This document shows positions 12,207 through 64,000 of a stretch of 64,000 bases of DNA, in pieces. Numbering within the stretch: position 1 is the stretch's first letter; each line of letters opens with the position of its first letter. Origin of the DNA: Lepidodermella squamata (Eukaryota; Animalia; Gastrotricha); contig JBLDXI010000009.1 in assembly GCA_047495785.1 (NCBI GenBank), forward strand, positions 1,240,001 through 1,304,000, read 5' to 3'. The position numbers and the translations under genes were made by a program. Below the pieces are notes generated by a model. That model did not search any database and had not been told where the DNA came from. It worked only from the letters and a program-made list of their open reading frames with translations.

Positions 12207-12416
12207 AAGAGCGGGGGCCTTTCGAAGCCGAAATGACTGTGCGTGCAAATTTGCCGCTAAATGACCGCTGATATGCAAGACCATATTTTTTGAAGAAAAC
12301 TTTTGTCTGAAAGGAACAATAATTCACAGAAAATCATTGTTTTATATTCAGGGCAGCTTTCATCTCTTTTCCCCTTAAATTTAGTTAATAAATAGGTTAA
12401 TTGAGACTTTTTCTAG

Positions 12417-14755: not shown

Positions 14756-16503
14756 ATGTTAAATAACTTCAACATAAAAGACGTCCCTCTTCTTGTCCAA
14801 GTGGCGACTGGGGTAGCTGTAACGTCGCTGACTTCATTCTATTTATATAGAAAGCTGGTTTGCCATCGTTATTTCAAACGGCGAGGAATCCCTGGACCGG
14901 AGCCGCACTGGTTCTGGGGTAATCTACATCAAATTTCGTGCGATAACCGCCACGAAGTCATGGCTGAATGGGGAAAGAAATATGGCGATTTTTATGGCTT
15001 CTATGAAGGTCCAACGCCAATTCTTGTGACGACGAGCCTCGAAGGCGCTGAACAAGTTTGCGTTAAACAATTCGCTTACTTTCAAGGTCACAATGTAAGC
15101 AAAACAGGTTGAATACAATTTTTGCAAATGAGTAATTTCTAGTTGATACCAACGGCCCCGGATGCTTCGGAAACAGAATCAGCGTTAAGTCATATGTTCT
15201 GGGCAACTGGTGATTATTGGAAACGGTAGGCTCTAAATAGATAGAATTCCCTGAACCTAGGATTGATCTCGCTAGGCTGAGAAGTGCATGTAACCCTGCG
15301 TTTTCAACTGGAAAATTGAAATCCTATCAGCCTTTGATGGATCAAACCCAAGTTGATTTCATGGAACATCTCTCTGAAAAAGCGAAATCAGGCGAAAACT
15401 TCGATTGCCGAACGTCATTTCAGTATCTAACGTTGGACGTTATCGCCGAAGTTGGTTTTGGGCTCGATTTCAAAGCTATCAAAACCAAGGGAGTGGGGAA
15501 TCCCGTTCTGAAGAGCCTACAAGAGCTGTTATTTCTAAGCTTTCAACCGAATCCAGCGATCGAAATTTTCAAAGCATTGCCGGCGTTAGTTCCTCTTGGA
15601 AAGGTTCGTTACTTACAGATTAGTACCAATACGATTCCAAATGTTCTTGTTTAGATGATGTTGCATCATGATGTAGAAAACTTGACCGGAATGTTTAAAC
15701 CCATTGGCTTGCTGATAGATTTAGTTGGAAAAATCATGGAGGGTCGCTTGAAAAACCCGGCGGCGCGGCGAAACGACTTGTTACAGCTTATGATTGATAA
15801 TTCGGAACTGATGAAGCATGAATCAACCGTTGACAAGGCGTTGATGAACGCTCGTGAAATCAAGGCGCAGGCTTTTTTGTTTTTCTTCGCTGGGTACGAG
15901 ACATCGAGCTCTACGTTGGCCTTCATATCCTATTGCTTGGCGACGAATCAAGATGTGCAGGGGAAACTGGTCGCAGAAATCTACTCGAAATATCCGAAAG
16001 AGAAAAAGGATTTTAAGCCAGAATATGACGTAGTAATGAACGAAATGCCGTACTTGGATTGGGTGGTGCGGGAGACTCTTCGTTTGTATCCGATTGCGCT
16101 TCATGTGGTTCACCGGTATGTTCTCGGTGAAACCCAACTCTGTGGTATCCCCATTGATCTCGGCTGCAAATCAGTTCTGGTTGACATGTGGTCAATTCAC
16201 CAGAATCCTGAATTTTGGGGACCAGTCGATCCTAAGAAATTTTACCCAGAGCGATTCTCTGCGGAAAATTCCGCAGGTCGGCCCGACATTGCATTCATGG
16301 CGTTTGGCTACGGCCCTAGGCAATGTATCGGAATGCGTTTGGCGTTATTCGAGATGAAGACGACGTTGGTTAACCTTCTTCATCGCTTTAAAATTATGGA
16401 ACCGACGGGCGGCTATCCATCGAGCGGCTTAAAACTGTCGTCTCGCGAGATTGGCGCTCTACAACCGATTGGTGAAGTTCCAATAAGACTAGCTTACCGC
16501 TGA
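14756..16503 (+). CDS. Cytochrome P450, CYP3 clan (copy C, close paralog of A); exons 14756-15094, 15143-15225, 15276-15603, 15655-16503
   Basis: Same motifs and the same three intron positions as copy A; intact frame. Confidence 0.93.
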
Positions 16504-16752
16504 AAGAGGGGAAAGCTCTCAGACCTAAATAACAAATCACCATTTTTGCAGACTTGCCGACTTAACAAAACACTGTTAAACACTGATATATTTATACTCA
16601 TAGTGGGAGAATCTGTTACCCTCAAGCAATGACTATTCATCGTATAACTACAGAGTCACGAATAATTCTTTGATATTCATGGTTTTTCCGCTTATTTTCA
16701 TATTTTCTTCTGCTAAAATGTGTATCATGAATGTTCTTCGACTTGTTTCTAG

Positions 16753-16875
16753 ATGCTATTCACTTTCGATTTGAATAGTTTGCCTAGATTTCTGACAATA
16801 ACAGCCGGTGCTGTGTTGGGTTCTTTTGGATCCTTCTACTTACACCGGAAATTTTTATGCCATCGTTGTTATTAG
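16753..16875 (+). pseudogene. Orphaned B-type CYP N-terminal fragment (40-aa upstream ORF) directly abutting copy D
   Basis: MLFTFDLNSLPRFLTITAGAVLGSFGSFYLHRKFLCHRCY* aligns with the copy B start MLLFTIDLNSFLKYLTVAAAAVLGPLGSFYLYRKFVCHRY; its TAG (16873-16875) touches the ATG at 16876 in the same frame. Confidence 0.85.
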
Positions 16876-18584
16876 ATGTTAAATAATTTTAATATAAATG
16901 ACGTCCCACTCTTCGTCCAAGTGGCGACTGGCGTAGCCGTCACTTCGCTGACTTCATTCTACTTATATCGAAAATTGGTTTGCCATCGTTATTTCAAACG
17001 GCGCGGAATTCCCGGACCAGAGCCACACTGGCTATGGGGCAATCTTCATCAAATATCTTGCGAAAATCGGCACGAAGTTATGGCAGAATGGGCTAAGAAA
17101 TATGGCGACTTCTATGGCTACTACGAAGGTCCAACGCCGTTTCTGTTTACTACCAGCGTAGAAGCTGCTGAGCAAGTTTGTGTGAAGCAATTCTCAGACT
17201 TTCAGGGTCACTACGTAAGCAAGAGGAAACGATATAATTTTTCTCGAATTTTTGACTTTTTACTCCAGATTTTCCCTCTCGCACCTGATCCGGACGACAC
17301 AAACAGCATGGTCAACCATATGTTCTGGGCTCAGGGTGAGCAGTGGAAGCGGCTCAGAACAGCGACAAATCCAGCATTTTCTACTGGAAAATTGAAGTCT
17401 TATCAAAATTTGATTGAGGAGAGCCAACAAGATATTGTTGAGGTCCTGGGAAAGCTTGCAAAGTAAGTTACTTTCTTGATATTTTATAGCTGATTATTCG
17501 CAATATAATTGACAGAGCTGGCAAAAGTTTCAATTGCCATGAAATTTACCAATTGCTTACCTTGGATGTCATTGCCGAGGTTGGATTTGGGCTCGATTTC
17601 AAGGCTATTCGAACTAATGGCGAGGGAAACCCTGTTTTAATGGCTATTCGGAAAATGTTCGCCGAAACAATGAAACCGAACCCTGTGCTAAACAGCTTTC
17701 GCATATTCCCTATCTTGGTACCACCTGCTAAAGTTTGGATGACCCGACAGCTGAAAACTATGACTGGAATTTTCAAAGAAATGGGAAAATTACTAAGTAT
17801 TGTCGGCGATATTATGCATAAACGGCTTCGGGGCGAGTCGCCGAGGCGTAACGACCTACTTCAGCTCATGATCGATCATTCCGATCTGATTAAGCAAGAA
17901 TCTGCGACTAAAAAGGAACTGCTGAATGAGGTCGATATCAAGGCAATGTCTCTACTGTTTTTCTCCGCTGGCTACGAAACAACCAGTTCATGCCTGGCTT
18001 ACACCTCATTTTGCCTGGCGACTAACCCTGAAGTTCAAGAAAAGCTGTCAGCTGAAATCTACTCCAAGTACCCACTGGAAAACAAAAATTTCAAGCCGGA
18101 TTATGATACTGTTATGAATGAAATGCCGTATCTCGACTGTGTTATTCGCGAAAGTCTACGCGTTTTTCCTATAGCAATTCACGCCGTTAACCGGTTCGTC
18201 CTCAACGATACTCAACTCTGCGGAATTCCGATCGATCCAGGTTGCAAGGCCGTCGTTATTGATCTGTGGTCCATCCATCGAAATCCTGATTTATGGGGCC
18301 CGGTTGACACGAGCAAGTTCTACCCCGAGCGATTTTTGCCGGAGAATTCGGCTGGCAGGCCTGAGGCTGCGTTTCTCGCCTTCGGTCACGGCCCGCGTCA
18401 GTGTATCGGAATGCGATTGGCGTTGTTTGAGCTTAAACTGACGCTGGTTAACATCCTTCATCGATTCAGGATGGTTGAACCCGATGGTGGTTACCCGGCA
18501 AGTGGGCTTCGTCTGTCGTCTCGGCAAGGCTTGATCCTAACACCATTGGATGGAGTTCCTATCAAGTTGGTCGCAAAATATTAG
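16876..18584 (+). CDS. Cytochrome P450, CYP3 clan (copy D, chimera of A/C-type N-terminus and B-type body); exons 16876-17214, 17269-17462, 17516-18584
   Basis: SAGYETTSS, ESLR, PERF, FGHGPRQCIG; intact frame; intron positions match copy B. Confidence 0.92.
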
Positions 18585-19004
18585 AGCATAGGATGCAACT
18601 GACTTATTAATTTATCCGAATGCAAGAACTTATTGAGCGAGCGGAAGTTTTCGAGGCTAATTAATAGGCATTTATACTGTATTTTTTATAGAACGATCAG
18701 GTGATAATGAAGTGAGTCAACAGGGAAATAAAATAAATCTTCTATCTAACGTTTTCTATTCTTTCCATGTTAGATGAATTACTTTTATATCATGAGTTTA
18801 CTGTCTCAAACAATTTGTCTGCTTGTGGCCATTTCGTCAGCTAAACTCCAGGGTTTTCTAATTTCTAATTGAAGTTCACAATTTCCTTATTGTTTGTGTT
18901 TCTCTCGGTTGTTATCTTTTATTTTTACGATTAGCTGTTGATAACTTACAAGATATTCAAGTGTAGCAAATTACGGTTCGTCATATAGAAATTTACATTA
19001 AGAC

Positions 19005-20701
19005 ATGGTGTTACCCTGGTATGGTTACGTTGTGGCGGTGATTGGATCTTCCGGCCTGTTTTTCTATCTATACCGGAAATTCGTTTGCCACCGTTATTTC
19101 AAGAGACTTGGCATCCCTGGTCCTGAACCGCATTGGCTATACGGAAATCTGCATCAACTCTTGGTGAAAGACCGCCATCGAGTGGTGCTGGAATGGTCGC
19201 GAAAATACGGCGATTTTTACGGCTACTACGAAGGTCCGACGCCGATCCTAGTCGTTACCAATATCGAAGCCATCGAACAAGTTTGCGTGAAGCAGTTTCC
19301 TATTTTTCAGGGACATCGGGTAATTTCCGAAATTGAATTCAGTATTTTACCAAAATATAATGCAAAATTCAGGTTGTGCCAACCGATCAACCGGATGATA
19401 TCTTGCTCTTCGCCAAAGGCGAAAAATGGAAACGCCTTCGAACCACTGTGAACCCAGCTTTTTCTTCTGGAAAGCTGAAATCCTACGCCCCATCGTTAGC
19501 GAAGAGCCAGCGCGATTTGATGACTCTGTTTTCACAGAAAGCATCGGATGGCAAATCGTTTGAAATAAGAGACACATTTGGGCGACTGACACTAGGTTTG
19601 ATTCTGCTGAGCCTATCGTTTAAAATATTTAAGAGGGACATTTTTGCAAGATGTGATTGCAAGTGTTGGTCTCAATATAAATTTCAATGCGATATTGGAA
19701 CAAGCGACTCCGAATCCGATGCTTCAAAATCTTCGTGAATTTCTGGATAGCAGCACCAAACCAGCCCCGCCTATGGACCTGGCTCGATCTTTGCCGATAT
19801 TTGTTCCTGTTTTAGAGGTACCAGCAGATCTTTTGACTCGAGGAACATCACCAAGAATTTGTTTTAGGTTTTGACAAATACTTTAATATGGACCAAAGCC
19901 GGCTTATTTGGTTCGGTCGCTAAGCTCTTTGAACTTATTGGACAAATCATGGAACAGCGTCGAAGTGATGAATCATCCCAGCGGCGCGTTGACATTCTCC
20001 AGCTAATGCTTGATTCGAAAGAAAACGGGCGGACACGCTTGACTGACGATGAAATCAAGTCCATGTCGTTCATATTTTTCGTGGCTGGTTACGAAACAAC
20101 GGCTACCACCCTGTCCTAGGCGTCGTATCTACTCGCTACGAACCAGGCTGTTCAAGACAAATTGCGGGCGGAAATTTACTCGAAATATCCGAAGGATTTG
20201 CGGGGTGATTGGCAGCCCGAGTACGATGTGGTTATGCATGAGATGCCATACTTAGACTGGGTTTGTAACGAAACTATGCGCATCAATTCATTGGCATTCT
20301 CGATGTTGACTCGTTTCGTCGTTGGCGAGACGCAGCTGTGCGGAATCCCAGTCGGTCGTAACCTGGGCGGTGTTTACCTCGACATGTACAGCGTCCACCG
20401 TAACATCGATCTATGGGGCCCTGTCGACCCGGAAAAGTTCTACCCGGAGCGATTTTCGCCTGAGTATTCGGCTGGTAGACCGAATGCGGCTTTCCTGGCT
20501 TTCGGCCACGGACCGCGGCAATGCGTTGGAATGAGACTCGCCTTATTTTTGATGAAAATGACACTGACGAATTTACTACATCGATTTAGAATGTTGGAGC
20601 CTGACGAAGGTTATCCGGCGGAAGGTTTGCCCTTGAATTCGAGGGAAGGCAGCATTGGCCCTGCAAATGGAGTTCCAATTAAACTAATGTCGCTTTATTG
20701 A
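19005..20701 (+). pseudogene. Cytochrome P450 copy E with a single premature stop (TAG 20117-20119); exons 19005-19319, 19373-19595, 19651-19817, 19868-20701
   Basis: Full-length paralog of F; F has TAT (Tyr) where E has TAG, just after AGYETTATTLS; downstream frame otherwise intact, including FGHGPRQCVG. Confidence 0.85.
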
Positions 20702-20939
20702 TTTCATTAATTCCAATCATATTTTTAGTTGCTGATTACGTAAACTATGGTGATATTTTTCAAGATGAATCGTCGAAAATACAATCTAATATTTTCGAGC
20801 GTAGCTTATTTTCGATTTCTAACCAAAATGAGCCAGAAAACCTAAATAAGACATGAATTAATATGGCCCACGATAGTTATAAGCAGTGGGTCATATTTTT
20901 CCAGGGATCGAAATACGGGTGAAAAAGCGATGATTACAA

Positions 20940-21300
20940 GATGCGAAGTACTTTGGCGGGCCGACGAAACGATATATTTTACCACTTCTGCGAGCAAAGA
21001 GCTTTCCCCAGATCAGCCACGACCACAACTTAGCTCGTGGAGGGGCCATTTTTGCAGCTCCTCAAAGAACTCCTAAGCGAATTGTCAGAGGTAGTTACGA
21101 ATCATTTCCAGCCACACCCAGCCATGAAGAATAAGTTTTTCGCGTGTGACCGTTCTTGTTTCAGAATGAACCGCCGTAGTTCAACCGCCACAGGATGGTG
21201 CAATGCTTAACGCCATAGACCTGTGAAGCAACTGCACCGACATGTTCTTCGTTCTAACCTCAGCGACTGCTCGCGCAAGGCGGTCGTGGTGAGATTTTCC
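20940..21300 (-). mobile_element. Degenerate pogo/Tigger-like transposase N-terminus (pipsqueak HTH followed by CENP-B-type HTH traces)
   Basis: Manual minus-strand translation across a frameshift gives LARAVAEVRTKNMSV/VASQVYGVKHCTILWRL (psq HTH pattern), then stop-interrupted ...CGRG*...FARRSGKI/SFRRP. Confidence 0.55.
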
Positions 21301-22015
21301 AGGCCGAAAAAGGAAAAAGAAGAAATCGCATGCGTAATCTAGGTCATTGCCCTAAATTGCAAAAACGGTGCCTTGATTGTCTTTCGGGCGCGCACAGCCG
21401 GTTATAGCGAGAAACCTAGGTTATTCATCTGTTTTTGAAATTTTCAATTATCCTGCACAACTGTTGGTCGGCACTAAATCCAGCAATATAGACTATCAAT
21501 GCTGGATAGTGCAGAAGGGGACGAAATTGAGAGCAAAAAACGAAACGGCTTCACCGGCACCCATTCGGCTCAAGAGACGGCTATAAAGAACTACACCACC
21601 AGTGCAGGTGTCGAAATAGGCGGTTAAATGACTTCTGCGACCCTTCTCAAATATTTCAATTCTATTTTTGAGAACGAGCTGGACAATGACGTCACACGAC
21701 GTGGTGCTGGATAGCAAATTGCTTGCCCAAGGCAAATTTATCCAGCACTTAACCAACGAGCCAAGCTACGATTACAGAATTTTTATGTGCATCAAACTGC
21801 ATCAAACAATTTTTCTGCATGGGACTTGGGGTGATTTTCAATTGAACTAATATTGAGGCCTACATTATCCTCGTTGTAAAATTTTCTTTCTGGGGTTTTT
21901 TATATTTTTCTTGGGTTATATCTTCAATTCCAGTTCCACGACTTGCTTTGATAATCTACAAGATAATATAATCAAGCAAATTTCGTTTCATTTTTATAGA
22001 AATTAAGATAAAGCC

Positions 22016-23732
22016 ATGGTGTTACCTTGGTATGGTTACGTTGTTGCCGTGATTGGATCTTCCGGCGTGCTTTTCTATCTATACAGAAAATTCGTCTGCC
22101 ACCGATATTTCAAAAGACTTGGCATCCCTGGTCCTGAACCGCATTGGCTGTACGGAAATCTGCATCAAATGTTGGTGAAAGACCGCCATCGAGTTACGCT
22201 GGAATGGTCGCGAAAATACGGCGACTTTTACGGCTACTACGAAGGTCCGACGCCGATTCTGGTCGTTACCAACATCGAAGCCATCGAACAAGTTTGCGTG
22301 AAACAGTTTCCTATTTTTCAGGGACATCGGGTAATTTCCGAAATTGAATTCAATATTTTACCAAAATACTATAAAAATTTAGGTCGTGCCAGTTCAACCG
22401 GATGCTGAACGAGAGCCAGATCACCCTGTGAATCACTTGCTATTCGCACAGGGTGAAAAATGGAAACGCCTTCGAACCACTGTGAACCCAGCTTTTTCTT
22501 CTGGAAAGCTGAAATCCTACGCCCCATCGTTAGCGAAGAGCCAGCGCGATTTGATGACTCTGTTTTCACAAAAAGCATCTGCCGGAAAAACGTTCGACAT
22601 AAAAGACTCTTTTGCGCGACTGACGCTGGGTAAGGTTTTTCTAAAATTGTTCTACCCATTGTAAGAATGGTATTTTTGATAGATGTAATTGCGAGCGTTG
22701 GTTTCAATGTTGATTTCAACGCGATATTGGACCAAGCCACCCCAAATCCGGTGCTTGAAAATCTTCGCGAATTTTTGGATGTAAGCACCCAACCAGCCCC
22801 ACCGATCGACCTAGCCCGAGCGTTACCAATATTCGTTCCATTTTTCAAGGTAACACCAGATCATCCAACTCAATCAAAATGTTAAGGATTTATTTCAGGT
22901 TTTGACCGATTTCTTGATAAGGAACAATGCCGGGTTGTTTGGTTCGATCGGTAAGCTGTTGGAACTTGTTGGGAAAATCATGGAACAGCGTCGAAGTGAC
23001 GAATCATCGCAGCGCCGCGTTGACATTCTCCAGTTAATGCTTGATTCGAAAGAAAACGGGCGGGCACGCTTGACTGACGATGAAATCAAGTCCATGTCGT
23101 TCATATTTTTCGTGGCTGGTTACGAAACAACGGCTACCACCCTGTCCTATGCGTCATATCTTCTCGCTACGAACCAGGCTGTTCAAGACAAAGTGCGGGC
23201 GGAAATTTACTCGAAATACCCGAAAGTTTTGCGGGGTGATTGGCAGCCCGAGTACGATACGGTTATGCATGAGATGCCCTACCTAGACTGGGTCTGTAAC
23301 GAAACCATGCGAATTAATTCACTGGCTTTTGCGATTTTGACTCGTTTCGTCGTTGGCGAGACGCAACTGTGCGGAATCCCAGTCGGTCGCGACCTCGGCG
23401 GTGTTTTCCTTGATATGTACAGCGTCCACAGAAATATCGATCTGTGGGGCCCTGTCGACCCGGAAAAGTTCTATCCGGAGCGATTTTCGCCGGAATATTC
23501 CGCTGGCCGGCCGGATGCGGCTTTCCTCGCTTTCGGCCACGGACCCCGGCAATGCGTTGGAATGCGGCTCGCGCTGTTTGAAATGAAAATGACACTGACG
23601 AATTTACTGCATCGATTCAGAATGTTGGAGCCGGATGAAGGCTACCCGGCTGAAGGTTTGCCGTTGAATTCGAGGGAAGGCGGTATTGGGCCTGCGAATG
23701 GAGTTCCAATCAAACTGGCGTCTTTGTACTGA
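22016..23732 (+). CDS. Cytochrome P450, CYP3 clan (copy F); exons 22016-22330, 22383-22629, 22683-22849, 22899-23732
   Basis: AGYETTA, ETMR, PERF, FGHGPRQCVG; intact spliced frame. Confidence 0.93.
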
Positions 23733-23981
23733 TTCCCTTCTTTCCTAACTAGCTATATCAATAGTCGCTTTCGCGTAAATTATAGTTTGCTATGATAGTA
23801 TCTTTTAAGATGGATGCACGAATTACAACCAGTGAATTGCCTCAGAAAAAATGACACGAAAAACTGTGCTGTGAATGTTGTAGTGGAAGTATTTTGTTCT
23901 TTCTTCGTCACTGTGACAGAACACCTTTATTTTCTTACTATTTATTTGAAAGTTAATGTTATTTAATAAACTTGATTGTAG

Positions 23982-25948
23982 ATGATATTTTCCAAGTTTG
24001 AAATACCTTTCGACTTGAGTCGCGTGGAGTTGTCATTTCAGTTGAAGTGGTTCCATTACGTGGGTGCGGCTATTGTTGGTTCAACTTTCGCGTTCTATTT
24101 GAACCGGAAATGGCGGCAGAGATTGTTCAAGCGAATGGGCATTCCAGGCCCCGAGCCACATTGGCTGTATGGGAATATGCACCAATTGTGGCGCGAAGAT
24201 CGCCACAACGTCATGGTCGAATGGGCGAGGAAATACGGCGAGTTTTACGGTTTTTACGAAGGATCGACGCCGATTTTAGTGACAACAAGCTTGGAAGCGG
24301 CCGAACAGATCTGCGTGAAGCAGTTCTCCAGTTTTCAAGGTCACAGGGTAAGTTCTTTCGCGATAGCCTTGTTTTGTTCCTAAAGTAACATTTTCCATTT
24401 AAAAATGTGAAGCTTCTGCCGACGCAGCCTGATCCTGATGCCGATCCAGACTCTCCGGTGAGCCATTTACTGTTCGCTCAGGGCGAGCGTTGGAAACGGT
24501 TCGATTTGTTCTAAAGTTGGACTTGATTATTTCTAATTTTATTCATTTCAGACTTCGAACCACCGTGAACCCCGCTTTTTCATCTGGGAAACTGAAATCT
24601 TACGCTCAAGCGATGAATGAAATCCAAGAAGAGTTTCTGGTTCTGCTGTCGCAAGAAGCCAGGTGTGGAATAACCTGTTGAAGAGACATTACTTGATATC
24701 ATTTCATTCCAGGGCGGGAGAACCATTCAATATTCATAACTCGTTTCAATTACTGACCCTGGACGTTATCGGATCGTTGGGGCTGGGAATCGATTTTCAG
24801 GCGATTAAAACAAGAGGCGAGGGAAACCTTTTCCTTAGAAATCTTCGAAAATTCCTGGATGCAACTGTCAATCCTGCTCCGCCTCTGGATCTTGTTAGAA
24901 TTGTCCCTGAATTAACTCCAGTCATGAAGGTAAAATTAGTTATGAATTTAATGAATTTAATGAATTAGACTCTGTTTAGGCTCTTGCCAATTGGCAACTC
25001 AAAAGCATGACAGGCTTTTTCGGGGTTATCGGCGAAATGCTAGGGATGGTTGGAAAAATCATTGAAAATCGGAAATCTGACGACAAGTTCCGCCGACAAG
25101 ATCTTTTGCAATTGCTAATTGACGCTAAACAAATGAGTGACAACGAGCTAAAGGCAATGGCACTACTGTTTGTTTTCGCCGGCTATGATACAACGAGTAA
25201 TACCCTCGGCTTTATGGCCCATTGTTTAGCCGCTAATCCAAAAGTTCAAGAAAAGCTACGGGCGGAAATTTATTCGCATTACCCGGCGGGGGTAGATGCT
25301 ACGCCTGACTATGATGTCGTCATGAATCAAATGCCTTACCTCGATGCGTGCTGCCGCGAAACCATGCGCTTGTACCCGGTTGTTTACAGTTTCGTTAATC
25401 GGTTTGTCGTTGATAATACGACGCTGTGCGGAATTCCTGTTTCGCCGAAACTCGGCAGCGTTCTTGTTGACATGTGTGCCATTCATCAAAATGTCGATTT
25501 ATGGGGCCCGATTGACCCGAAAATTTTCCACCCCGAGCGATTTCTAGACGATAACGCTGCCAATCGACCAGATATCGCGTTTTTAGCCTTCGGTTACGGG
25601 CCTCGGCAATGTGTTGGTGAGTTGTGCGAAAAAATCGATCCAATTTTTTTTTAAGGAGGACGATTATGAAAATTTTCGAGATTACCAGGGTTTTTCGAAT
25701 TTGGAGTTTTCAAATTAATTTGGGCTTCAAATTAATTTATTAAAATTGAATTCGATTTCGGAATTGATTTAATCGATATAGGAATGCGGCTCGCTTTGTA
25801 TGAAATGAAGCTGACTATTACGAACTTGGTTCGGCAATATTTTATCGAGTTACCCAATGATCAATCGAACAGCTTTGTGGTGGCTTCTCGCGAAGGCGCT
25901 ATGGTTCCGAAAAACGGCGTTTTTGTCCAGTTGAAAGCCGTAGATTAA
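23982..25948 (+). CDS. Cytochrome P450, CYP3 clan (copy G); exons 23982-24347, 24413-24498, 24552-24662, 24713-24929, 24980-25616, 25782-25948
   Basis: AGYDTTS, ETMR, PERF, and FGYGPRQCV|GMRLALYEMK joined across a phase-1 intron; all phases consistent. Confidence 0.92.
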
Positions 25949-26481: not shown

Positions 26482-28435
26482 ATGGCGTATAACGAAAGCC
26501 ATTGCTACACAGTTGGAGCTGTGCTGAACTCAAGTTTTACCGAGTTGGCACGCAATGAATCCTCTCCGCCGCTGGAGGCTTTCGAAGATAAAGAATTTCT
26601 ACTCAACTACGCCTTTCGAAGCTTCATCGCTCTGTTTTCCTTGGTGCGAAGAATCGGCCCAGAAGTCGCCTGCTTCAGGAAATCGGCCTACAACGATTCA
26701 ATTAGTAGCTATTCGCTGTCGTCTTCCGTTGCAAGGATTTGGCGAAACACGATCGAGTACGACGTTCCAATGGAGAGCTGTTTCGAGAATGCGTACAAGA
26801 TCGCTGAATGCCTGTGTAACATGTCCTCCGTTTTCGCTTGCAAATACACCGACGAAATATGTACCTGCCCATATAACTACGGACCTTCTCCTGCGGTTCT
26901 CTGGAAAGTGACTAAACCATTCGGTCAAAATGTAATCAATTCTGTGGCCACAGCTTTCTATTTCGCCGCAATTCCCATCGCAATTCTAAGTTTGCTTTTT
27001 CCTGTCTAAATCTGATTGAAAATTTCGAATTTGATATTATTTTCACAGCGAATGTATTCGCCATCGCGATTTGGGTTAAAAATTCGCAACTGAGATCGGT
27101 TACTAATTTATTCATTTTTAACCTTATTATTTCGGGCCTAGCAACTACTTTCTTACGCATGCCATTGGACTTGTTGCTGCTCCTTGTTTGGCCTTTCCCA
27201 TGGATCATTCAACACCCAGTGTGGCTCGGTGACGTCACGTGCCGAATTTACAAAGCCTTACGTGAGATGAGCATGGTCGGCACAGTGTATACTTTGGCTG
27301 TGATCGGTTACGAGCGTTATCAGGCGATTTGCAACCCGCTGGAAAGCCAAAGACAGCTATCGCGACGGCGCGCTTACAAACTGATCGCATTCATTTGGAT
27401 CCTAGCATTTGTAATATCGATTCCCGCCATCTATATGCATGTCAGTCCATTAAACGATTTATAAGCTGATTTTTCATTGATTTTATTGAAAGGGTGTGAT
27501 GCTAGGCCCTGAATACTTTGGCTACCTTTACGTATGCGATCTTCAATTCGCGGGTTGGACCTGGGAAGATACTGGAAAGGACCCGCAGACGTATGTGTAT
27601 GCCATGAACAGCTACCAGTTCGCCACATCGATCTCACAATTCTTTGTCCCGATTACAATCCTATCAATTGTTTACGGGAAAGTCCTTGTTACGCTGCGAC
27701 GAAGAATCAAATCCGGCGACTTGCATGTCACCTACTGCAAAAATTGTTCGACTAAGATTTCCCGCCTTAAATCGAACAACTCCGTGGCTTCAGAGTAAAT
27801 TTGACAATATTTATCTATATATTTTATAACAAATTTTCCTTAGAGTATCACACGCCCATTCGCATCCGAAACGTCGCGATAACGATACGACGATTAAGAG
27901 AACTCGCCGTGCTACGCTGATGTGCTGCTTCTGCTTGGGCGCCTTCATTGTAATGTGGCTGCCACTCGAATTTATCCTGCTAATCAACAGTATTTCTTCT
28001 TTGTGGCCAGACCGCACTCGGTGGCTCGAACCATTGTTGCTACACACGAAAAACCCGTCGATGATTTCACTATTCGATGGCTTAGCTTCATTCTTCACCG
28101 TCGCGAATGCCGTAATTTACTGCGGTACCAACGTCGAGTGGGTTCGAACGGCGAAACGTCTCCTGCGAATGAAGACTGACGGCGATGATTCATCGACTAA
28201 CGTTCAAACTGTCTCGTTCAAGCGCAAGAATGTTTCTGATTCTGACGACGCGAATAACTCGAAATCTACGAGTGATAGCTCGAATGTTGTTGAAGAGGTT
28301 GTCAGTATAAAACCGGCTTTTGTTGAGATACCCAGTCGGAAAACGGCTGATTACTTCAACGATGACTTGTTGGAGCAGTCGCTTAACCGCTACGACACAT
28401 TGCTTTCAACTGATTCATTCAAGAAACTAGAATAA
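26482..28435 (+). CDS. Orphan class A (rhodopsin-like, peptide-receptor-related) GPCR with ~150-aa Cys-rich N-terminus (GPCR1); exons 26482-26989, 27049-27440, 27493-27794, 27844-28435
   Basis: Seven hydrophobic segments after splicing; LRSVTNLFILNL (ICL1/TM2), TM3 Cys, IGYERYQAICNPL, FFVP...VY (TM5), MWLP (TM6), NAVIY (TM7). Confidence 0.85.
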
Positions 28436-29516: not shown

Positions 29517-30251
29517 ATGTCTCGCTCGATATTTGTTCTGCTCGCCATTACCGCTGCCGTTTGCGCTCTCGATGCCGGCTACACGACGAAGCCGCCTGGT
29601 TCGTGCAAAACCGACGAAGACTGTACCTCGAGAAAGGCAGGAGTGTGCTGCTCGAAATGGGGCTTCTGCGGCGATAGCTTCTCGTATTGCAAGGGGGACA
29701 AATCCACCGCCCTGCCTACCAAGCAGCCCTCAACCAAGGCAGCTGCTTCAACAACGAAAGCCGCCACGACTTCAACCACGACAACCACGACAGCCACCTC
29801 AACTACCACTACGCAGCTTTCCAGCACCACCACTTCCACCACTGGGTACGTAATGTGTATTTCCAATTGATTTATCTTACTGGATCTTCATTTTAGGGAA
29901 GGCGACAGCGCTATTCCGATGAATCAGGTTTTCGCTACCAACTTCACCTACTACACGGCTAACGGCTACAGCGCCTGCGGTCCGATGGTCAACGCTTCGG
30001 CCGAGCTTGTTGCCGCCGTCAGCTCGCAGTGGTTCACCCAGCAAAACCCGAATCTCGACGCTGTTTGCCACGGCATCTGCGTTACCGTTACCTACCAGAA
30101 CGCATCGCTCACGCTGCCGATCAAGGAGAAGTGCGGTTCGTGCTCCAAGTTCAACCTGCAACTGTCGGAGCCAGCTTTCATTCAGATCGCTAGCGGCAGC
30201 CACGACATCGGCCACGTCAGCGACGCCGAGTTCAGCTTTGTTGCTTGCTAA
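29517..30251 (+). CDS. Secreted protein: signal peptide + hevein/CBM18 chitin-binding domain + Thr-rich linker + expansin-like/RlpA double-psi beta-barrel domain; exons 29517-29845, 29897-30251
   Basis: CKTDEDCTSRKAGVCCSKWGFCGDSFSYC (hevein core CCSxxGxCGxxxxYC); FTYY...GYSACG...LVAAVS..WF..NPNLDAVC..CVTVTY...KEKCGSC...LQLSEPAF (DPBB/expansin-like pattern); 51-nt phase-2 GT-AG intron joins the two ORFs in frame. Confidence 0.88.
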
Positions 30252-30449
30252 AAACTTATGAAATTTTCGAACTTCATTTTCCCCTCTTGATTACGTCTAA
30301 TACGGCGATTGTCATAGGCCAATAAAACTTAACATTGTTTCATCAGCGCTTCATTGTTGAAAGGTTACTCACTCATCTGCTTATAAGGCGAGAAAATTCG
30401 GGTTAAATCAACAAATCTTACTCATTACTAGTAAATAAAAAGTATAGAT

Positions 30450-30969
30450 ATGAGCTGTTTGCTTCGATTCGCTGTTTTTGCCTTGATTTTTGCGGCTTGC
30501 TCAGCCGCGGTTTGGCGTGATTGCGGCACTAACTACGGCAAAGTTGTTTCAGTCCACCTGCCAAGCTGTGGTAATCGTACTCGGTGCCGGTTGACCCGTA
30601 ATGAAACTGAGACGATCGAGGTCAAATTTATTCCAGGTAATTACGCATTTCGCTCAAATGTTCTGGTCTTATGCTTATTTTTTTGCAGGTGCTCAAGTTG
30701 CCAAAGTTCACACTATTGTCGTAGGCATTCTTGGAAACGTTCCCACCCCGTTTCCGCTACCTGACGCCAACGCGTGTAGCGACCCGGAAGTGCTGAAATG
30801 TCCGGTTGAGGGTGGCAAGGTGACAACGTATCGAAACAGCTTCTACGTCTCACCTGCATATCCGAAGCTTTCTCTCACCGTTAAATGGATGCTGGTCGAC
30901 TCTGAAAACTGGAACCGCCGCCTCGTATGCGTTATGACACCCATTCGTATCGGCGACAAAACTGACTAA
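30450..30969 (+). CDS. NPC2: NPC2 / ML-domain sterol- and lipid-binding protein; exons 30450-30636, 30689-30969
   Basis: Signal peptide, WRDCG, six Cys in ML-domain spacing, GNVPTPFPLPDANAC, CPV, YP.L.LTVKWML...VC. Confidence 0.88.
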
Positions 30970-56782: not shown

Positions 56783-59218
56783 CTAAACGTCAGAGCATAC
56801 AACGTTAGTATCATCAGAGTCATTCGATGTGCGATTTTCCACCGATTTCTCTTCACGCGTGGCAGAATCCGAAGATTTCTCGCGCATTTCCGCCGACAAA
56901 TCGCCGACAGATTGCCGTTGACACCTGCAGACAAGTTGTTTCACCAACGATATCCACTGGCGATTCGCTCCACAGTAGATCAGCGGCGAAAAGAACGTGA
57001 AAGTCATGGCAATTGCGTTGTATAGTACCAGGTTCGTTTCCCAGATAAACGGCATAGGAAGCAAGGGAAGCCAATTTATGACGCCGTCGGTAATCATTCG
57101 AAAATTGCGGAGAACTTCGGCTGTTTGCGACGGCAACCAAAGTAGGACAAAAGCAGCCAGGCAGCAACAACACATTATTGTTACACGGCGAGCCTGGATA
57201 GCCGCTCTTAGTTGGGATCGATCATTGCTACGAGGTGTTGATGATTCCACTGATGGGCTGAAAATGTAAAAATTGTTATCGCCATGAGGATTTCACGGTT
57301 CCTTACTCATAGCGAACAGTTCCTTTCCGATGAGAAACGATTTTCCTTTGCTTCAGTCGCGTTTCAATTGAACTGCGAGGTTTGTCTTTTTCTGCTATCA
57401 ACGCTTGCCGCTCGTTGACTCTTCGAGACACCGTAATTGCGATTTTAGCGTAAACAAAGCACAGAATGACAGCGGGAATAAAGAATTGCGTTATCGGTAT
57501 TACGATCTTAGTGGCATACGCGACGTTGCGCCAATAACGAAAAGCATCTGGGTCGCTGAGCATAGTGTAATCATTGGCAATGTAGCCGCAAAATAGCCTG
57601 TAACCATATTCTTCGAAACCAAGATAAGCACCCTATAGCAAAACGCATCAATCAAATCGACTAAAATTAAAGGTCTGGTTACATTGGCGTATAACCCTGG
57701 ACCGCAAAGTAGGAGCGACCAAATCCAGAGGCAGCACAGCAATTTGTAGGCTCGATTGCGCGAGAGTTGTCGCTGGCTTTCTAACGGATAGCAAATCGCT
57801 TGATAGCGTTCGTAGCCGATAAGAGCCAGCGAATAAACTGTGCAAATCATAGTAAGGTCGCGCAGGATGGAATAACCTCTGCAGGTAAGCTGAGCGGCCC
57901 AAATAGGCTCGGATACGATCCAGGGGAAGTCACTTCCTAACATAAGTGCATTCAGAATCTATGAAAAATAATAATAATCAGATAGCCTTTAATATCGCGA
58001 GAGATACCTTAACAGGTAGACGGAGCAGGGTGGCTATAAGATTCGCGATATTCAAATTTATTACGAATATATTCGTAACAGTCTGCAAATGCGGACACTT
58101 CAGCCAAACAAATAGCAGTAAGCTGCATACTAAATTATATAAATGACAATAATAAATATAAATAAAAATACCCATTAGAGCCCAGAAAGTTTTCGGAAAA
58201 TATTTTTATTTTTCTTTCCCTATTGACACCTGCTTTTCCGATAGAGAAAAATCGGGGATTAAGATTCTGAAAGCCGCATATTTTTATCATCTACCGTTAT
58301 TGAGATACTCCAGTGTCAAGTTGTCACGTGACCTTACCTGTTGTCACCCCCATGGCGATTATCTCTAGATAGCTAGGAAGCCGCTCTCAAAGGAAAGGTT
58401 CATCAGATTGATGAGATCTATCTAGAAATGCATTCAGTTGGGTCATAGTAGGTAATACTTCGTGAAAAATCGATTTTGATGACACTTTAGTGCAGTTTGG
58501 TGACAGTCCCAAAAAACGGCTCCTAGCTCCCCACCCGATCTATACGAGACACTGGTCATTTATCCGTTTTCCCCGAACTATACGATTTCCCGGTGCGGAG
58601 ATATGCCTTTTAGACAACCTGGGGTTTTAGTCGGATATTTTACTGGTTTTTTTAAATATAGGGTGGCAGGAAAAGATATGCCGTTAATTTGCAAAAATTT
58701 GCTATTAGATTTTCCAACTTACATGAAATGGCGCATGGTATTGTTAGACCGTAAAGAACAACCGAGACAAAGGTCGTATAAGGCAAATCATTGATAGGAT
58801 TGATTACAATGGTGGTCTCCGTGAACTTCGTTTGAATGTCGCTGCAGGTAGAACACCGCGTTGTCGAGTTGCAAGCACCTCTACAAAAGCACAGAGCGGC
58901 AATTTTCATCAGCTGGTAGCAACCTTCGGGAATTTTCGATGCGATAACATTTCGTCGGAATAACATTACTGTGTCTAAATCACTGACAACTACTGTCTTG
59001 TTGAATGGCTGCCGATACCAGCAGGCGTTGTCTGGACCAAGTCGGCTGGCCCATTCCATCAGGTTGAAGAAAACCAGAGCGTGAAGTCGCAGTGATGTCT
59101 CCGTCGCGTTGGTCGAGTTATCGGCGTAGATGTCTGCAGGTGCCAGGCCAGCCACGGTTTGTTTCAAGTCCAAAAGCGCCCCTAACGTGGTTGACGGTTC
59201 TTCCTCATCGGCGCCCAT
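56783..59218 (-). CDS. Orphan class A GPCR with Cys-rich N-terminus (GPCR2); exons 59218-58723, 58129-58008, 57958-57683, 57632-57307, 57257-56783
   Basis: LQTVTNIFVINL, IGYERYQAICYPLESQRQLSR, QFFIP, LWLP, SPLIYCG; splice phases consistent and shared with paralogs. Confidence 0.87.
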
Positions 59219-59484
59219 TTTTTTGTGTGAAAAATTAACCACTGTTTACGAAATCGCACAATCAAAATAATCGAAACACCCCGTTTTTCAATTTTCGCAC
59301 TAATTAGCTATAAATTGCGTAGGCGACCCTAGATCGTTCAGTCTGGGGCTCATTCTATTTTGAATAATCTCACGCCACTGATCTCAGGTACATATTGATA
59401 TTGATTATAAATTATTTCCAGCAATTCATAAAATAATGGAATTATTTTATTTATAATAAGGGTCTTGGAACCAACATTGATGAG

Positions 59485-59659
59485 GTTCCAGCGCTAAATT
59501 TTCCCAATTTCGACTTTTCTTGATCGATTAAGAAGCTGGGAATTTTTCTTCCACGAGCTATATATAGAAACATTTTCAATATGGGCTTCGAAACTTCTGG
59601 TATCGGTGAAATCACTGATATTGGGAAACCCATCTTTTGGGAAAATTTAGCGCTGGAAC
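59485..59659. repeat. 175-bp MITE-like element with perfect 22-bp terminal inverted repeats
   Basis: gttccagcgctaaattttccca (59485-59506) / tgggaaaatttagcgctggaac (59638-59659); no clear TSD. Confidence 0.75.
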
Positions 59660-59692
59660 TAAATAGAAATATATTTTTTTATGTCTTTGAAG

Positions 59693-61920
59693 CTAAGAAT
59701 TATGGATTGTTTTCGTTTGAGATCTGACTGCTGGCAGGTCGCTCGAAGTAGACGTTGACGACATTTCTCGAAGTTCAACTGGAGCCGTCTGGTTGCAACG
59801 TAAAGGCAGGCAGCAAAAAGCTTCTTTGACCAAGCTGAACCAGACTTTGTTACCTCCGCAATAGATAACCGGCGAGAAGATTGAGAAAGTCATCGCAATT
59901 GCGTGATAGAGTTTGATGGAATCTGTCGTTAGAAATTGTGTATACCAGCCGAGCGCAAGCACCATTGGTTGGTAATAGACCGAAATACAGGATAGAACAA
60001 TAGCTAAAGAGTAAGGCAGCCATAGCAAGACGAAGGCGGCTAAACAGTAGAAGCATGTCATTGTTGCCCTTCGAGTCTGTTCCAACGCTCTCTGACGCCT
60101 TCGTTCGTATTCCTCCGATCTAGATTCAGTGAAAGAGCTAAAACGGAAAGTTAGCATTAGCCAATATTTCAAAAATTCAAAATTCCCGTTACTCTGAGCG
60201 TAGAACACGTCTGGAGTTGCTAATTTTAGGGACACAACACTGTGAAAGATTAATCCCAACGCGCTTCTTTAGAACGACGAGAACTCTGCCGTAAACTACA
60301 CTGAGGACGACGGCTGGAATGAAAAACTGGGTGATGACTAAGATGAGCTTGTAAATATTCATGGTGGTGACGATGGTGTTGTAGTCGAGATCACTTGATA
60401 TCAATTGATTTAGATCCACTCCGCAGAGTGGCTGGTAAGCATCTCCAGTGCTGTTTAGCGAGATACCCTGCAAGCAATACAAGCAATTCAGGTAATCATA
60501 ATTTTCGATATTTTCTCACGTTGTAAACCATCTGTGGAATACAGGCCGTCACCGACCATGCCCATACAATTGCAGTCAACTTGTAAGCCCTTTTACGAGA
60601 AAGTTGGCGTTGACTGTTCAAAGGATTGCAAATAGCTTGATAACGCTCGTAACCAATTAGAGCCAGCATATTTGCTGAAATCCCCATGGCCAGTGGTGGT
60701 AAAATGGAGTAGAATTTGCAGACAATATCCGCTATCCAGTAAGGATCACTTGCAAACCATGTTATCGCATCGTGCTTGATAAATATCGCATACGTCTAAA
60801 TATAGGACTGAATTTATAATCATCGATTTCTAATAAACACAAAAAACCTATACCGCCCAAGGCAACGTCAAAATGACGACTGCAAGGTTTGCCAACACCA
60901 AGTTTATGATAAAAACGTTGGTAACCGTCTTGAGCTGCGGATTCCTCGCCCAAACATACGTGACAACGCTGTTTACTGGAGTTGAAAAAAATTTGGAAAT
61001 ATTTGGAGTTTGATTTCGAAGTGTAAAAAAGAACGCATTTTCCGCTTAAGTTGAAGTTGCATCTCAATAATGGGTGATATTTTCGATGCCATCTTTATCG
61101 GTAGAGTTAACTTTATCCCATAGGATTATCGCCTGGAAATAAAGTTGACTCTATATTTGTATGATTTTCCAATCTCGCTTGATTATCTTGCTAACGGCCG
61201 ATTTTTGTCCAAACTTTGTCCACGTTTTGACCTCAAAAACACTTTTTGACCTAATTTTATAATGAATCACAGCAATAAAAGAGGCTGGGAAAAGTAGGTC
61301 ACGGCACAGAAATGATGAGCAATTTGAAACTGGATTTTTTTGCTAGATTTTAAGCTGGCTTTATCGATTGAGTCGGCTTCGAAAAAAACCCCCAATTAAA
61401 AATTCTTACAGATGATAGCACCAATCATGGTGACAATGTACACGCCAGCTGCGGCGTAACTTGGCCACCTTGTGAGAATTTCGTCGCGTAAGACATCCCA
61501 GGTTCGCACGTCTAATGTGAGTTTCCAACACGCTTCAATCGTATCGTTAGCCTGACATCCTCTTTCGTTTGTCGAATACGGTGCCTTGCAGACGCATTTG
61601 GAAACCATCTCAACGATTTGATAGCAACCTTCGGGCAAGCCATCCGCGACTAAATTTCTGCGAATGAAATCGCTGTTACTCCAGCCTTGGTTGAACCTCG
61701 CCGATGTGTTGAAAGGAGGACGATGCCAGCATACACTGTCTCTTCCTGTTGTTTCAGCCCAATACATGACCTGAAGGAAGATAGATGCGACCAAAAGCGT
61801 GTACTTCTCCGTCGCGTTGGTCGCATTGTCCGATAAAATCATGTCTTGCGTCAACGTCCGAACTGTCTCGTTCAGCGCGTACATCTGGCTGACTAGCAAA
61901 TCTACGTTGCCCGGTTCCAT
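59693..61920 (-). CDS. Orphan class A GPCR with Cys-rich N-terminus (GPCR3); exons 61920-61410, 60975-60854, 60795-60520, 60467-60193, 60137-59693
   Basis: LKTVTNVFIINL, IGYERYQAICNPLNSQRQLSR, QFFIP, LWLP, SPVIYCG. Confidence 0.87.
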
Positions 61921-62454: not shown

Positions 62455-64000
62455 TTATACTGAGATACTCGAGTAAGCACTGTTAGTAGTTATGTCAAGG
62501 CCATAGTCCTTTCGCGCATTAGATTCCGATGAAGCCCGATTTTCACTGGAGCTGGACGACTTCTCTCGCATTTCGACACCCGAGTCAGCAACAGGCTGAG
62601 CTGTCCGGCAACAAATCATGCCCTTAGCCAGCGTCAACCACTGCCGATTAGATCCGCAGTAGATGAGTGGAGAGAAGAGCAGGAATGTCATAGCGATTGC
62701 ATCGTATAGAGATTGAGATTCTTTGGAGATCAGACCAGTCAGTTCTAGCGATCCCCAATCTAGCTTATTATAGGTCAAATGCCAAAGGCTAAAAAGCGCG
62801 CCGCTAAGCTGCGAAGGGAGCCATAACAGAACGAAAGCAGCTAGACAATAAAAACACATCAAGGTAGCTCGTCGAGTTTGCCGAGCTGTGTTGTCTTGAT
62901 TTGCCTGGGCGACACGCGATTCTGGCAAAGGACTGAAAATCAAATGGTTGAAATGAAACTTTGATAGATTATGGAAATAACTCACGCTGAATGGACCTTG
63001 CTTCTCCGCCGAATAGCGCGGCGACTGATTGGCTGAGTTGATGGTGTTACGCTGTTGTAACCAGCAGTACCAGCTCCTAGTTCCTGTCGATTTTCGAGCC
63101 GCTTTCTCAATACAAGCAAGATTTTCCCATAGACAAAGCACAGAATGATGCCTGGAATGAAGAATTGCGTTACAGGAATGAACAGCTTGTAGCAGTCTAT
63201 CAGGGTGAACAGAAGCTCGTACGACCCAATCGCGAAAGAATCGACCCCGCAAATCAGCGAATAGCCGCGAGTTTCGGGTCCTAGACTCACACCCTTTGAC
63301 AGGAATTAATATAAAAATGGCATTCAATCTCAAAACTTACGTTAAAGTACAACCCTGGGGCGCACATCACAAGCGACAGAAGTAGGATACCTGCGACTAG
63401 CCTGCGAGCCCGTTTTCGCGATAGCTGACGTTGGCTGTCCAGCGGGTTGCAAATGGCCTGATAACGCTCGTAGCCGATCAGCGCCAATGTATAAACGGTT
63501 GTGACTAAACTCAGCTCGCGTAGAATTGAGAAAACGCGACAAGTTACATCCGCAAACCACACTGGATGCGATAGTAACCAAGGTGGGGAGTTTTCAGACA
63601 TTGCCCTCGTCATCTGATGCCAATTTCATTTAATTTTGATTCCTTGAAATTTTGTGATTTCATACCTGAATAGGCAAACGAAACAAAGTGACGACCAAAT
63701 TTGATATTGTCATGGTTACAACGAAGATATTGGTGACCGTTTGCAGCTGGGCGTATTTGGCCCAAGCCAATACTAGAAGACCGTTAACTTGAAGCAAAAA
63801 TTTTAAATATTTTTAGTAAAAAAAGAGGGTCAAAACTAACGAATTAAAGAGCATGGAATTGTTAGGCTGTACAATATTGTAGCTAGCAATACTTGAATAG
63901 GCTTGAAATCGGGTGTAAAGGTGGCATCGCGTAGTTCGAATGTTGTCTGAACCGTTGGGCAAGCGTAGAAAGTTTCGGTCGAGTTGCAACCTAGTTCACT
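62455..64000 (-). CDS. Orphan class A GPCR (GPCR4), 5' end outside the window; exons >64000-63841, 63787-63666, 63613-63341, 63293-62986, 62932-62455
   Basis: LQTVTNIFVV, IGYERYQAICNPLDSQRQLSR, QFFIP, LWLP, SPLIYCG; same intron positions as GPCR2 and GPCR3. Confidence 0.87.

Follow-up and report, generated by a model that had tools for sequence, protein, structure and literature searches.

A Cys-rich N-terminal domain predicted on ten rhodopsin-class receptors of the gastrotrich Lepidodermella squamata

Ten five-exon genes of Lepidodermella squamata begin with an exon that encodes a Cys-rich module. We consider it reasonably probable that this module is the N-terminal extracellular, ligand-recognising domain of a small, old, and lineage-restricted subfamily of rhodopsin-class GPCRs. 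To our knowledge, a folded N-terminal domain is almost never found on a class A peptide-type receptor, and the exceptions known among class A ectodomains (LRR and LDLa modules) are both ancient and widespread. Our verdict from sequence comparison is that a known receptor type appears to carry a new domain here, a real and narrowly distributed novelty. Literature searches on gastrotrich GPCRs and on Cys-rich N-terminal domains of rhodopsin-like receptors yielded no account of the family.

Results

The window (the whole 64,000-nucleotide stretch analysed, positions 1,240,001 to 1,304,000 of contig JBLDXI010000009.1) contains genes A to D of the family. Three first exons and the cut end of a fourth encode one homologous module of about 140 amino acids. 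Gene A lies on the forward strand, with the ectodomain in exon 1 (26482..26989) and the 7TM core in exons 2-5 (27049..28435; blocks at about 27049-27164, 27195-27446, 27580-27708, and 27875-28435). Its ectodomain is the most divergent copy in the window (18-26% identity to the others), and its donor, A/GTTTG, has the same position and phase as in the other genes. Genes B, C, and D lie on the reverse strand. Exon 1 of gene B (58723..59218) starts with an ATG at 59218, encodes the ectodomain and the first half of TM1, and closes with a phase-1 T/GTAAG donor. An intron of 593 nt separates it from exons 2-5, which encode the 7TM core and C-terminal tail (56783..58129; blocks at about 57981-58129, 57590-57943, 57306-57563, and 56783-57250). 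Gene C has a similar exon 1 (61410..61920), with an ATG at 61920, an ectodomain of about 140 residues, a linker, the first half of TM1, and a terminal phase-1 T/GTAAG donor. The exon 2 acceptor lies 434 nt past this donor, and exons 2-5 encode the remaining half of TM1, TM2-7, and the C-terminal tail (59693..60975; blocks at about 60860-60975, 60511-60759, 60258-60350, and 59693-60106). For gene D, the window end cuts exon 1, leaving its 3′ part (63842..64000); the exon runs on to about 64327, outside the window (G000:C9:1303842-1304327). Its 7TM core occupies exons 2-5 (62455..63788; blocks at about 63663-63788, 63335-63601, 63072-63188, and 62455-62901). The range singled out by an earlier sequence-only reading starts at 58723, the last base of the gene B first exon, and ends at 61920, the gene C ATG.

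Six Cys are conserved in the module, as are its N-glycosylation sequons, and one Arg-Asn pair is invariant. In gene C numbering, its motif is G-R/P-D-x-x-C64-W/F ... N71-x-S/T ... R88-N89 ... E-G-C99 ... C109-x-C111 ... C122 ... C131, preceded by an amphipathic helix at residues 36-58. The sequence-only reading had reported such a motif and helix in the first exons, and both were found where it had placed them. The two Cys it noted at the visible end of the "GPCR4" exon are the last two ectodomain Cys of gene D. Ectodomain Cys counts were even in 12 of 13 sequences, comprising the ten genes and three environmental homologues. C109 and C122 are both absent from gene H, and this joint absence suggests that they form one disulfide pair.

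Sequons and the lack of an obvious signal peptide, also claimed earlier, were likewise confirmed. Each ectodomain copy bears 3-5 sequons, and the initiator Met is aligned at the start of all 13 sequences. Kyte-Doolittle hydropathy was at most 0.92 for every 19-residue window in the first 25 residues, which therefore contain no signal-peptide-like stretch. Sequons on either side of the long helix, an even number of Cys, and a non-hydrophobic N-terminus together predict that the module is extracellular. We rejected the long amphipathic helix as an internal signal anchor, given the conserved sequons on both sides and, in 12 of 13 sequences, a hydropathy under the customary threshold for membrane segments. 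The linker from the ectodomain to TM1 is variable, at 15-25 residues. A tethered agonist was also rejected, because the stretch from the last Cys to TM1, variable in length and sequence and modelled with low confidence, is unlike a conserved Stachel peptide.

All searches were run exon by exon rather than with spliced proteins as queries. In the 121-Mb genome, a profile built from the ten ectodomain copies recovered exactly these ten and no stand-alone copy. Since each scored between E 1e-37 and 2e-66, their similarity is far beyond chance. With the TM3-4 exon as query, the same ten genes were recovered and no others. In all ten, the ectodomain copy is directly upstream of, and collinear with, four rhodopsin-class 7TM exons. 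Exon 1 ends inside TM1 at a phase-1 GT donor in the same position (10 of 10), and a frame-compatible AG acceptor is present for every donor. From this conserved structure, we infer a phase-1 splice that joins exon 1 to the remainder of TM1.

Among 1.84 billion proteins, a profile search revealed a single cluster of relatives, the receptor of an environmental eukaryote, in agreement with the earlier proposal that the ectodomain is lineage-restricted. One homologue, P0001, contains the ectodomain and TM1-4 in one uninterrupted reading frame, as do P0005 and P0006. This single frame argues that the ectodomain belongs to the receptor. P0001 matched the family profile with 94.7% probability (hhalign) and, over TM1-4, scored 82.7 bits to PF00001 (7tm_1). 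A word-index search with its ectodomain recovered P0001 alone. The equivalent search with its TM1-4 (E up to 1e-3) recovered only P0001, P0005, and P0006, with no named relative. JGI metagenome contigs queried with P0001 and the TM3-4 alignment yielded no confirmed relative.

Alternatively, the first exons could be small genes in their own right, or could consist of untranslated or decayed sequence, and merely be located upstream of receptor genes. The link between exon 1 and the 7TM exons is drawn from genomic sequence rather than transcripts, and two first introns in the window (434 and 593 nt) are long for this genome, compared with 45-61 nt in the other eight genes. A separate gene would, however, have to end in half a TM helix at a conserved donor with a matching acceptor, and a separate secreted protein would need the signal peptide that is missing here. 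The invariable collinearity, the zero stand-alone copies, and the open frame of three homologues from another organism also argue against separation. This explanation is thus very improbable, and on present sequence comparisons close to refuted. The earlier assignment of the first exons to the receptor stands.

We next compared the ectodomain to known domains. Among the window exons, Pfam gave no match to LRR, LDLa, Frizzled CRD, HRM, GAIN/GPS, Methuselah, or ANF/VFT domains. Extending the Pfam search to 13 members and to E values up to 10 returned five unrelated families, each hit a single time with E 0.16 or higher, and no receptor ectodomain. In the PDB, a sequence profile search returned nothing but a designed coiled coil (E 2.1), and the ESM Atlas contained no usable match to the gene C ectodomain. 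Independent AlphaFold runs for gene C (m39774c6b03a2) and gene B (m1cd587905ec4), paralogues about 30% identical, predicted the same order of secondary structure elements with moderate confidence (pLDDT 78-79, pTM 0.71-0.73; 10-13 sequences). The predicted fold had no structural match among solved members of known GPCR ectodomain families. The sequence-only reading had not recognised the module as LRR, LDLa, Frizzled CRD, GAIN, HRM, or Methuselah, and neither Pfam, the PDB, nor fold comparison did so. Small helical disulfide-rich folds lose sequence signal fast, and our comparison covered the PDB and Pfam using models of moderate confidence. The module might therefore be a very diverged member of a described Cys-rich extracellular fold, such as a helical relative of the Frizzled-type CRD or another helical disulfide module. 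We consider this improbable.

The 7TM core has the features of class A. Single TM3-4 exons, rather than whole receptors, scored 46.2 and 55.4 bits to PF00001, above the curated cut-off of 30.5 bits. E-R-Y, C3.25 and the ECL2 Cys, F-F-I-P, and L-W-L-P were present in nine or ten of the ten genes. The TM7 motif is S-P-L/V-I-Y in eight genes, N-A-V/A-I-Y in genes A (N-A-V-I-Y) and H, and N-P-L-I-Y in the environmental homologues. The class A micro-switch motifs (E-R-Y, TM3-ECL2 Cys, P5.50, W-x-P, and x-P-x-x-Y) are thus kept, and signalling through G proteins is therefore probably retained by the 7TM core. Alignment to the beta-3 adrenergic and A2A receptors placed an Asn at position 2.50 in nine of ten genes and all three environmental homologues, with Gly in gene A. 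The sodium-site Asp 2.50, common in class A though not a criterion for membership, has no counterpart in the family. Ser at 7.49 was confirmed by alignment to the H2 receptor. Engineered Asn 2.50 impairs G-protein signalling in other receptors, so coupling is not certain.

Similarity to solved receptors differed between exons. For TM3-4, the best match was NTSR1 (E 8e-12 to 1e-10), followed by other peptide receptors (about 1e-6); NTSR1 was not the best match for TM1-2 or TM6-7. The TM6-7 exon gave weak aminergic matches and had weak similarity to any solved receptor. The proposed derivation from a neuropeptide receptor is therefore partly supported, by the exon-wise similarity of TM3-4 but not by the weak aminergic matches of TM6-7, and the word-index search gave no named relative at E 1e-3.

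Paralogues share 18-50% identity in the ectodomain and 49-80% in TM3-4, and the ectodomain diverged faster than the 7TM core in all 36 gene pairs. Faster divergence fits diversified recognition and relaxed constraint equally. With ten genes, all apparently old by these identities, the family does not bear out the earlier comparison to an expanding chemoreceptor family.

Discussion

We propose that TM1 would act as a reverse signal anchor, taking the ectodomain across the ER membrane. Membrane insertion in this manner would be unusual for an N-terminal domain of 140 residues that is rich in disulfides and has no cleavable signal peptide. Within the ER, the domain would be glycosylated and fold into a compact, mostly helical bundle with three disulfides, modelled as one long central helix, four or five shorter helices, and a two-stranded clasp. 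Positioned above the 7TM bundle, it would help to recognise a ligand that is probably a peptide or small protein, either ahead of or during engagement of the transmembrane pocket by that ligand. Two-step ligand capture is known from secretin-class and glycoprotein-hormone receptors. On this reading, the ectodomain would bind ligand.

The ectodomain could also be real and extracellular without being the ligand site, serving instead in folding, export, surface stability, or pairing, or as a lid that controls access to the pocket. Conservation in it is highest at positions of a scaffold-like kind (six Cys, the sequon Asn, and a Gly), the 7TM core retains complete class A architecture, and related peptide receptors bind ligand without an ectodomain. 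However, a structural role is not obvious for the invariant Arg88-Asn89 or for the conserved loop G-R-D-x-x-C-W-x-R-x-P-F-N. Moreover, the ectodomain has been kept open and intact in ten paralogues despite their low identity, and therefore under long purifying selection, beyond that expected of a passive spacer. We regard a purely non-ligand role as unlikely, though to be taken seriously, and continue to favour ligand recognition.

The best solved TM3-4 matches belong to the peptide-receptor branch that includes NTSR1 and the ghrelin, motilin, neuromedin U, tachykinin, and cholecystokinin receptors. The family shares with this branch E-R-Y-x-A-I-C-x-P in intracellular loop 2, the TM3 Cys, P5.50, and W-x-P. 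It differs in having Asn for Asp 2.50 and Ser for Asn 7.49, the likeness being one of exon-wise similarity. In contrast to the ten-gene family, these receptors have short N-termini without a folded domain.

Glycoprotein-hormone and relaxin-type LGRs (LRR with or without LDLa) likewise join a folded, glycosylated, disulfide-bonded module to a class A 7TM core, and a logic of capturing ligand first would match theirs. Unlike LGRs, the domain described here is helical and of about 140 residues, has no LRR or LDLa match, and lacks a signal peptide. Its connection to TM1 is a short variable linker, compared with a conserved hinge in LGRs. HRM and Frizzled CRD are also small extracellular domains with an N-terminal helix. 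They contain three and five disulfides, respectively, and both perform the first step of ligand capture. The ectodomain differs from them in Cys spacing and is borne by a class A rather than class B or F 7TM; it matched neither in Pfam, PDB sequence, or fold comparisons.

Another lineage-restricted orphan group is PROF1, a rhodopsin-like family of platyhelminths predicted by a classifier to be peptide-responsive (2011, PMC3261222). Platyhelminths are close relatives of gastrotrichs according to a microRNA study of L. squamata (PMC6468455). PROF1 genes are intronless, with D-R-C/M/L after TM3 and N-F/G-x-x-Y/F in TM7; they do not significantly resemble other GPCRs, and a folded ectodomain is not described for them (PMC3261222). 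The ten-gene family is similarly lineage-restricted, rhodopsin-like, and orphan. We rejected membership in PROF1, as five exons, E-R-Y, S-P-L-I-Y, and clear similarity to 7tm_1 and NTSR1 set the genes apart from PROF1 as described.

A bolder interpretation, which we hold tentatively, is that the ectodomain represents a new fold family. On this view, a glycosylated helical domain, self-contained and held by three disulfides, would capture ligand and would be translocated across the membrane without a signal peptide. Its origin may lie on a class A 7TM resembling peptide receptors, either within the gastrotrich lineage or in a somewhat broader group of microscopic animals. Ten copies reading ten peptide or protein cues might then constitute a private signalling system, with sodium-independent activation (Asn 2.50/Ser 7.49).

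The practical reach of these findings is narrow, concerning one obscure phylum. The sodium-site model of class A activation gains an interesting natural case in the Asn 2.50/Ser 7.49 pair. If confirmed, the ectodomain would found a domain family of its own, probably with a small fold that is also new, and would be a clean example of ectodomain acquisition by a receptor. It would also offer a natural test case for how a large folded N-terminus crosses the membrane without a signal peptide, and would supply gastrotrich neurobiology, a poorly known field, with ten orphan receptors.

Ten copies of a first exon

In ORF listings, receptor exons occupy the minus strand between 56.8 kb and the end of the window; a single receptor gene on the plus strand, gene A, spans 26.5-28.4 kb. 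These listings and alignment defined the first exons of gene A (26482-26989, plus strand), gene B (58723-59218, minus) and gene C (61410-61920, minus), whose mutual alignment covers their full length. All searches were run exon by exon. The eukaryote assembly comprises 121.2 Mb in 151 contigs (window, G000:C9:1240001-1304000), with a GC content of ~43% and very short introns. Single-exon searches, followed by a profile of all copies, recovered exactly 10 ectodomain copies genome-wide (E 1e-37 to 2e-66), and whole-genome exon and profile searches revealed none beyond these. Contig C9 holds eight of them in ~126 kb, and C1 and C15 carry one each; gene D, the fourth copy in the window, is truncated by its edge at 64000. 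The sequence-only reading had described a motif shared by three first exons and proposed a genomic profile search; the 10 copies place that motif beyond chance.

Other genes share the window. In a 687-aa open frame (5220-7283, minus), a long N-terminus rich in Ser, Arg and His precedes a full protein kinase domain (PF00069, E 1e-67); the frame looks CDK-like, presumably of the CDK12/13 kind. About six tandem cytochrome P450 genes with introns span 10453-25654 (plus), one exon matching PF00067 at 2e-57. Their N-terminal exons are near-identical in places, suggesting recent duplication. Within this array, on the opposite strand, a 165-aa open frame (13549-14046, minus) without a Pfam match carries the motif N-N-G-V-E-G-W-H, which we take to be reminiscent of Mutator-type transposase remnants. 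Three small secreted-looking frames adjoin gene A (29517-30969, plus). The first combines a signal peptide and a Thr-rich tail with a hevein-like chitin-binding motif, whose PF00187 score of 21 bits falls short of the 27.8 cut-off; the second contains Cys and has no Pfam match; the third matches the ML lipid-binding domain PF02221 (E 4e-14). Adjacency to gene A is their sole link to the receptors. Four tandem P4-ATPase genes (ATP8B-like flippase; 31221-54517, minus) separate gene A from genes B-D.

Predicted joining of exon 1 to the 7TM core

All ten first exons break off midway through a hydrophobic helix (typically I-P-C-S-x-x), with a GT donor at an identical codon position (phase 1). In every gene, a frame-compatible AG acceptor follows a pyrimidine-rich stretch, past which the helix runs on into P-Q-L-Q-T-V-T-N-I-F, a conserved segment of intracellular loop 1 and TM2. 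First introns measure 45-61 nt in eight of the ten genes, 593 nt in gene B and 434 nt in gene C. That of gene G, a copy outside the window (L036:5562-5615; G000:C9:1350562-1350615), is 54 nt, in frame and stop-free, so the exon 1 frame is open for 270 aa; retention would add 18 residues within TM1.

Exons for TM1b-TM2 (beginning with the second half of TM1), TM3-4, TM5 and TM6-7 lie downstream of each ectodomain exon, collinear on the same strand within ~2.5 kb; the TM5 exon was not detected among those 3' of the gene H ectodomain exon. Searching the genome with the TM3-4 exon (E up to 1e-5) matched the same ten genes only. Taken together, these results indicate a strict one-to-one association of domain and core.

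Run against 1.84 billion representative proteins, the profile matched a single one, P0001 (E 1.6e-4), from an environmental metagenome assembly; with this one relative, the module's description as lineage-specific held. P0001 carries an ectodomain homologue and TM1, TM2, TM3 and TM4 in one unbroken reading frame, matches the family profile with 94.7% probability (hhalign) and shares 43% identity with gene D over TM3-4. P0005 and P0006, two paralogues of P0001 that share its source, are laid out likewise and occur in tandem arrays. Homologous receptor arrays lie on AT-rich eukaryote contigs (L031:1-4670, L030, L032, L034 and L040; ENA ERZ23486787, ERZ27332993, ERZ27333047 and ERZ23486764; Logan SRR10912798). 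The environmental genes have one intron, at TM4/TM5 only, versus four in the genomic genes. Donors, acceptors, collinearity and the uninterrupted frame of P0001 are four independent lines that agree in making exon 1 a predicted part of the receptor, supporting the joining first proposed.

The 7TM core

The TM3-4 exons exceed the Pfam 7tm_1 cut-off. Their nearest solved structure is neurotensin receptor 1 (E ~1e-11), followed at E ~1e-6 by vasopressin, ghrelin, motilin, tachykinin, cholecystokinin and similar peptide receptors. The suggested derivation from a neuropeptide receptor fits these exons, but TM1b-2 and TM6-7 gave weak, mixed matches to solved structures. A word-index search with TM1-4 of P0001 found no named relatives at E 1e-3, leaving the core rather isolated.

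Family signatures include Asn in place of Asp at 2.50 (confirmed by alignment), C3.25, an extremely conserved loop (L-I-G-Y-E-R-Y-Q-A-I-C-N-P-L-x-S-Q-R-Q-L-S-R-K/R-R-A), F-F-I-P in TM5, L-W-L-P in TM6 and S-P-L-I-Y in TM7. In place of this TM7 motif, genes A and H carry N-A-x-I-Y, and the environmental homologues N-P-L-I-Y; Ser occupies 7.49 in eight of the ten genes. The class A sodium pocket has two polar residues, at positions 2.50 and 7.49. In genes B, C and D, respectively, the former lies in TM2 exons at 57981-58129, 60860-60975 and 63663-63788, and the latter in TM7 exons at 56783-57250, 59693-60106 and 62455-62901. The best PDB match of the TM2 exon, the A2A receptor chimera 5wf5, has Asn at the aligned 2.50, versus Asp in the related 5wf6; we take 5wf5 to be an engineered D52N mutant. 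Gene H is the most divergent copy. Its TM3-4 exon (L037:4710-5004; G000:C9:1391710-1392004) is interrupted within E-R-Y by ~40 nt with a TAA, which points either to a short additional intron or to a gene in decay.

Ectodomain features and predicted fold

In the 10-copy alignment (gene C numbering), C64, N71, R88, N89, C99, C111 and C131 are invariant, and G59, C109 and C122 nearly so. C109 and C122 are absent together from gene H, which hints at a candidate C109-C122 disulfide pair. Environmental proteins have an additional N-terminal Cys in G-C-F-N-F-S/T, which stands in for C99 in two. Twelve of the 13 sequences (ten genomic, three environmental) have an even number of ectodomain Cys. Sequons recur as L-N-E-T near residue 17, N-x-T at 35, N71-x-S/T and N-D-T at 125.

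All 13 have a Met at the alignment start, 4-20 residues ahead of the first conserved motif. No hydrophobic N-terminus was found within the first 25 residues (maximum 0.92; Kyte-Doolittle, 19-residue windows). A long helix (residues 36-58), flanked on both sides by conserved sequons, has the character of an amphipathic helix, not of a membrane segment, in 12 of the 13. Hydropathy and alignment thus bear out the amphipathic segment, sequons and absence of an obvious signal peptide noticed earlier. From these sequence features, we infer an extracellular, glycosylated and disulfide-bonded ectodomain, which TM1 may translocate as a reverse signal anchor.

AlphaFold2 models of gene C with TM1 (10-sequence alignment; pLDDT 78.2, pTM 0.71) and, in a second run, of gene B without TM1 (13 sequences; pLDDT 79.4, pTM 0.73) have an identical element order. 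The fold starts with a short strand, followed by three short helices, a long one of ~23 residues and a further short one with the first Cys. Next come the loop holding the N71 sequon and a pair of helices (11-14 residues) with R-R-N and C-x-C, then a Cys-containing loop whose strand pairs with the first, and a low-confidence linker. Pfam, a PDB sequence profile search and the ESM Atlas gave no match to a known domain, in keeping with the original 'unrecognised' label. A diverged version of a known fold, too distant for these searches to pick up, we consider improbable. In the best-supported interpretation, a class A GPCR resembling peptide receptors carries a new, previously undescribed extracellular domain. 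Our literature search found no published description of the family; the flatworm PROF1 family is set apart by its description.

Family history and putative role

Pairwise identity averages 32% (range 18-50%) for the ectodomain and 59% (49-80%) for TM3-4, the former being more diverged in all 36 gene pairs. All ten first exons retain an open reading frame. The domain tree groups the three environmental sequences in a fully supported clade, which a very long branch separates from the ten genomic copies. The family is thus older than the split between the two organisms; genes A and H have long branches of unsure placement. The receptor family is small and old, with no recent burst, and the proposed chemoreceptor-like expansion was not borne out. 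Overall, the observation behind the sequence-only reading was confirmed and its interpretation in part. As to function, the main rival, a purely structural or regulatory ectodomain, seems unlikely to us; the putative new domain probably has a part in ligand capture.
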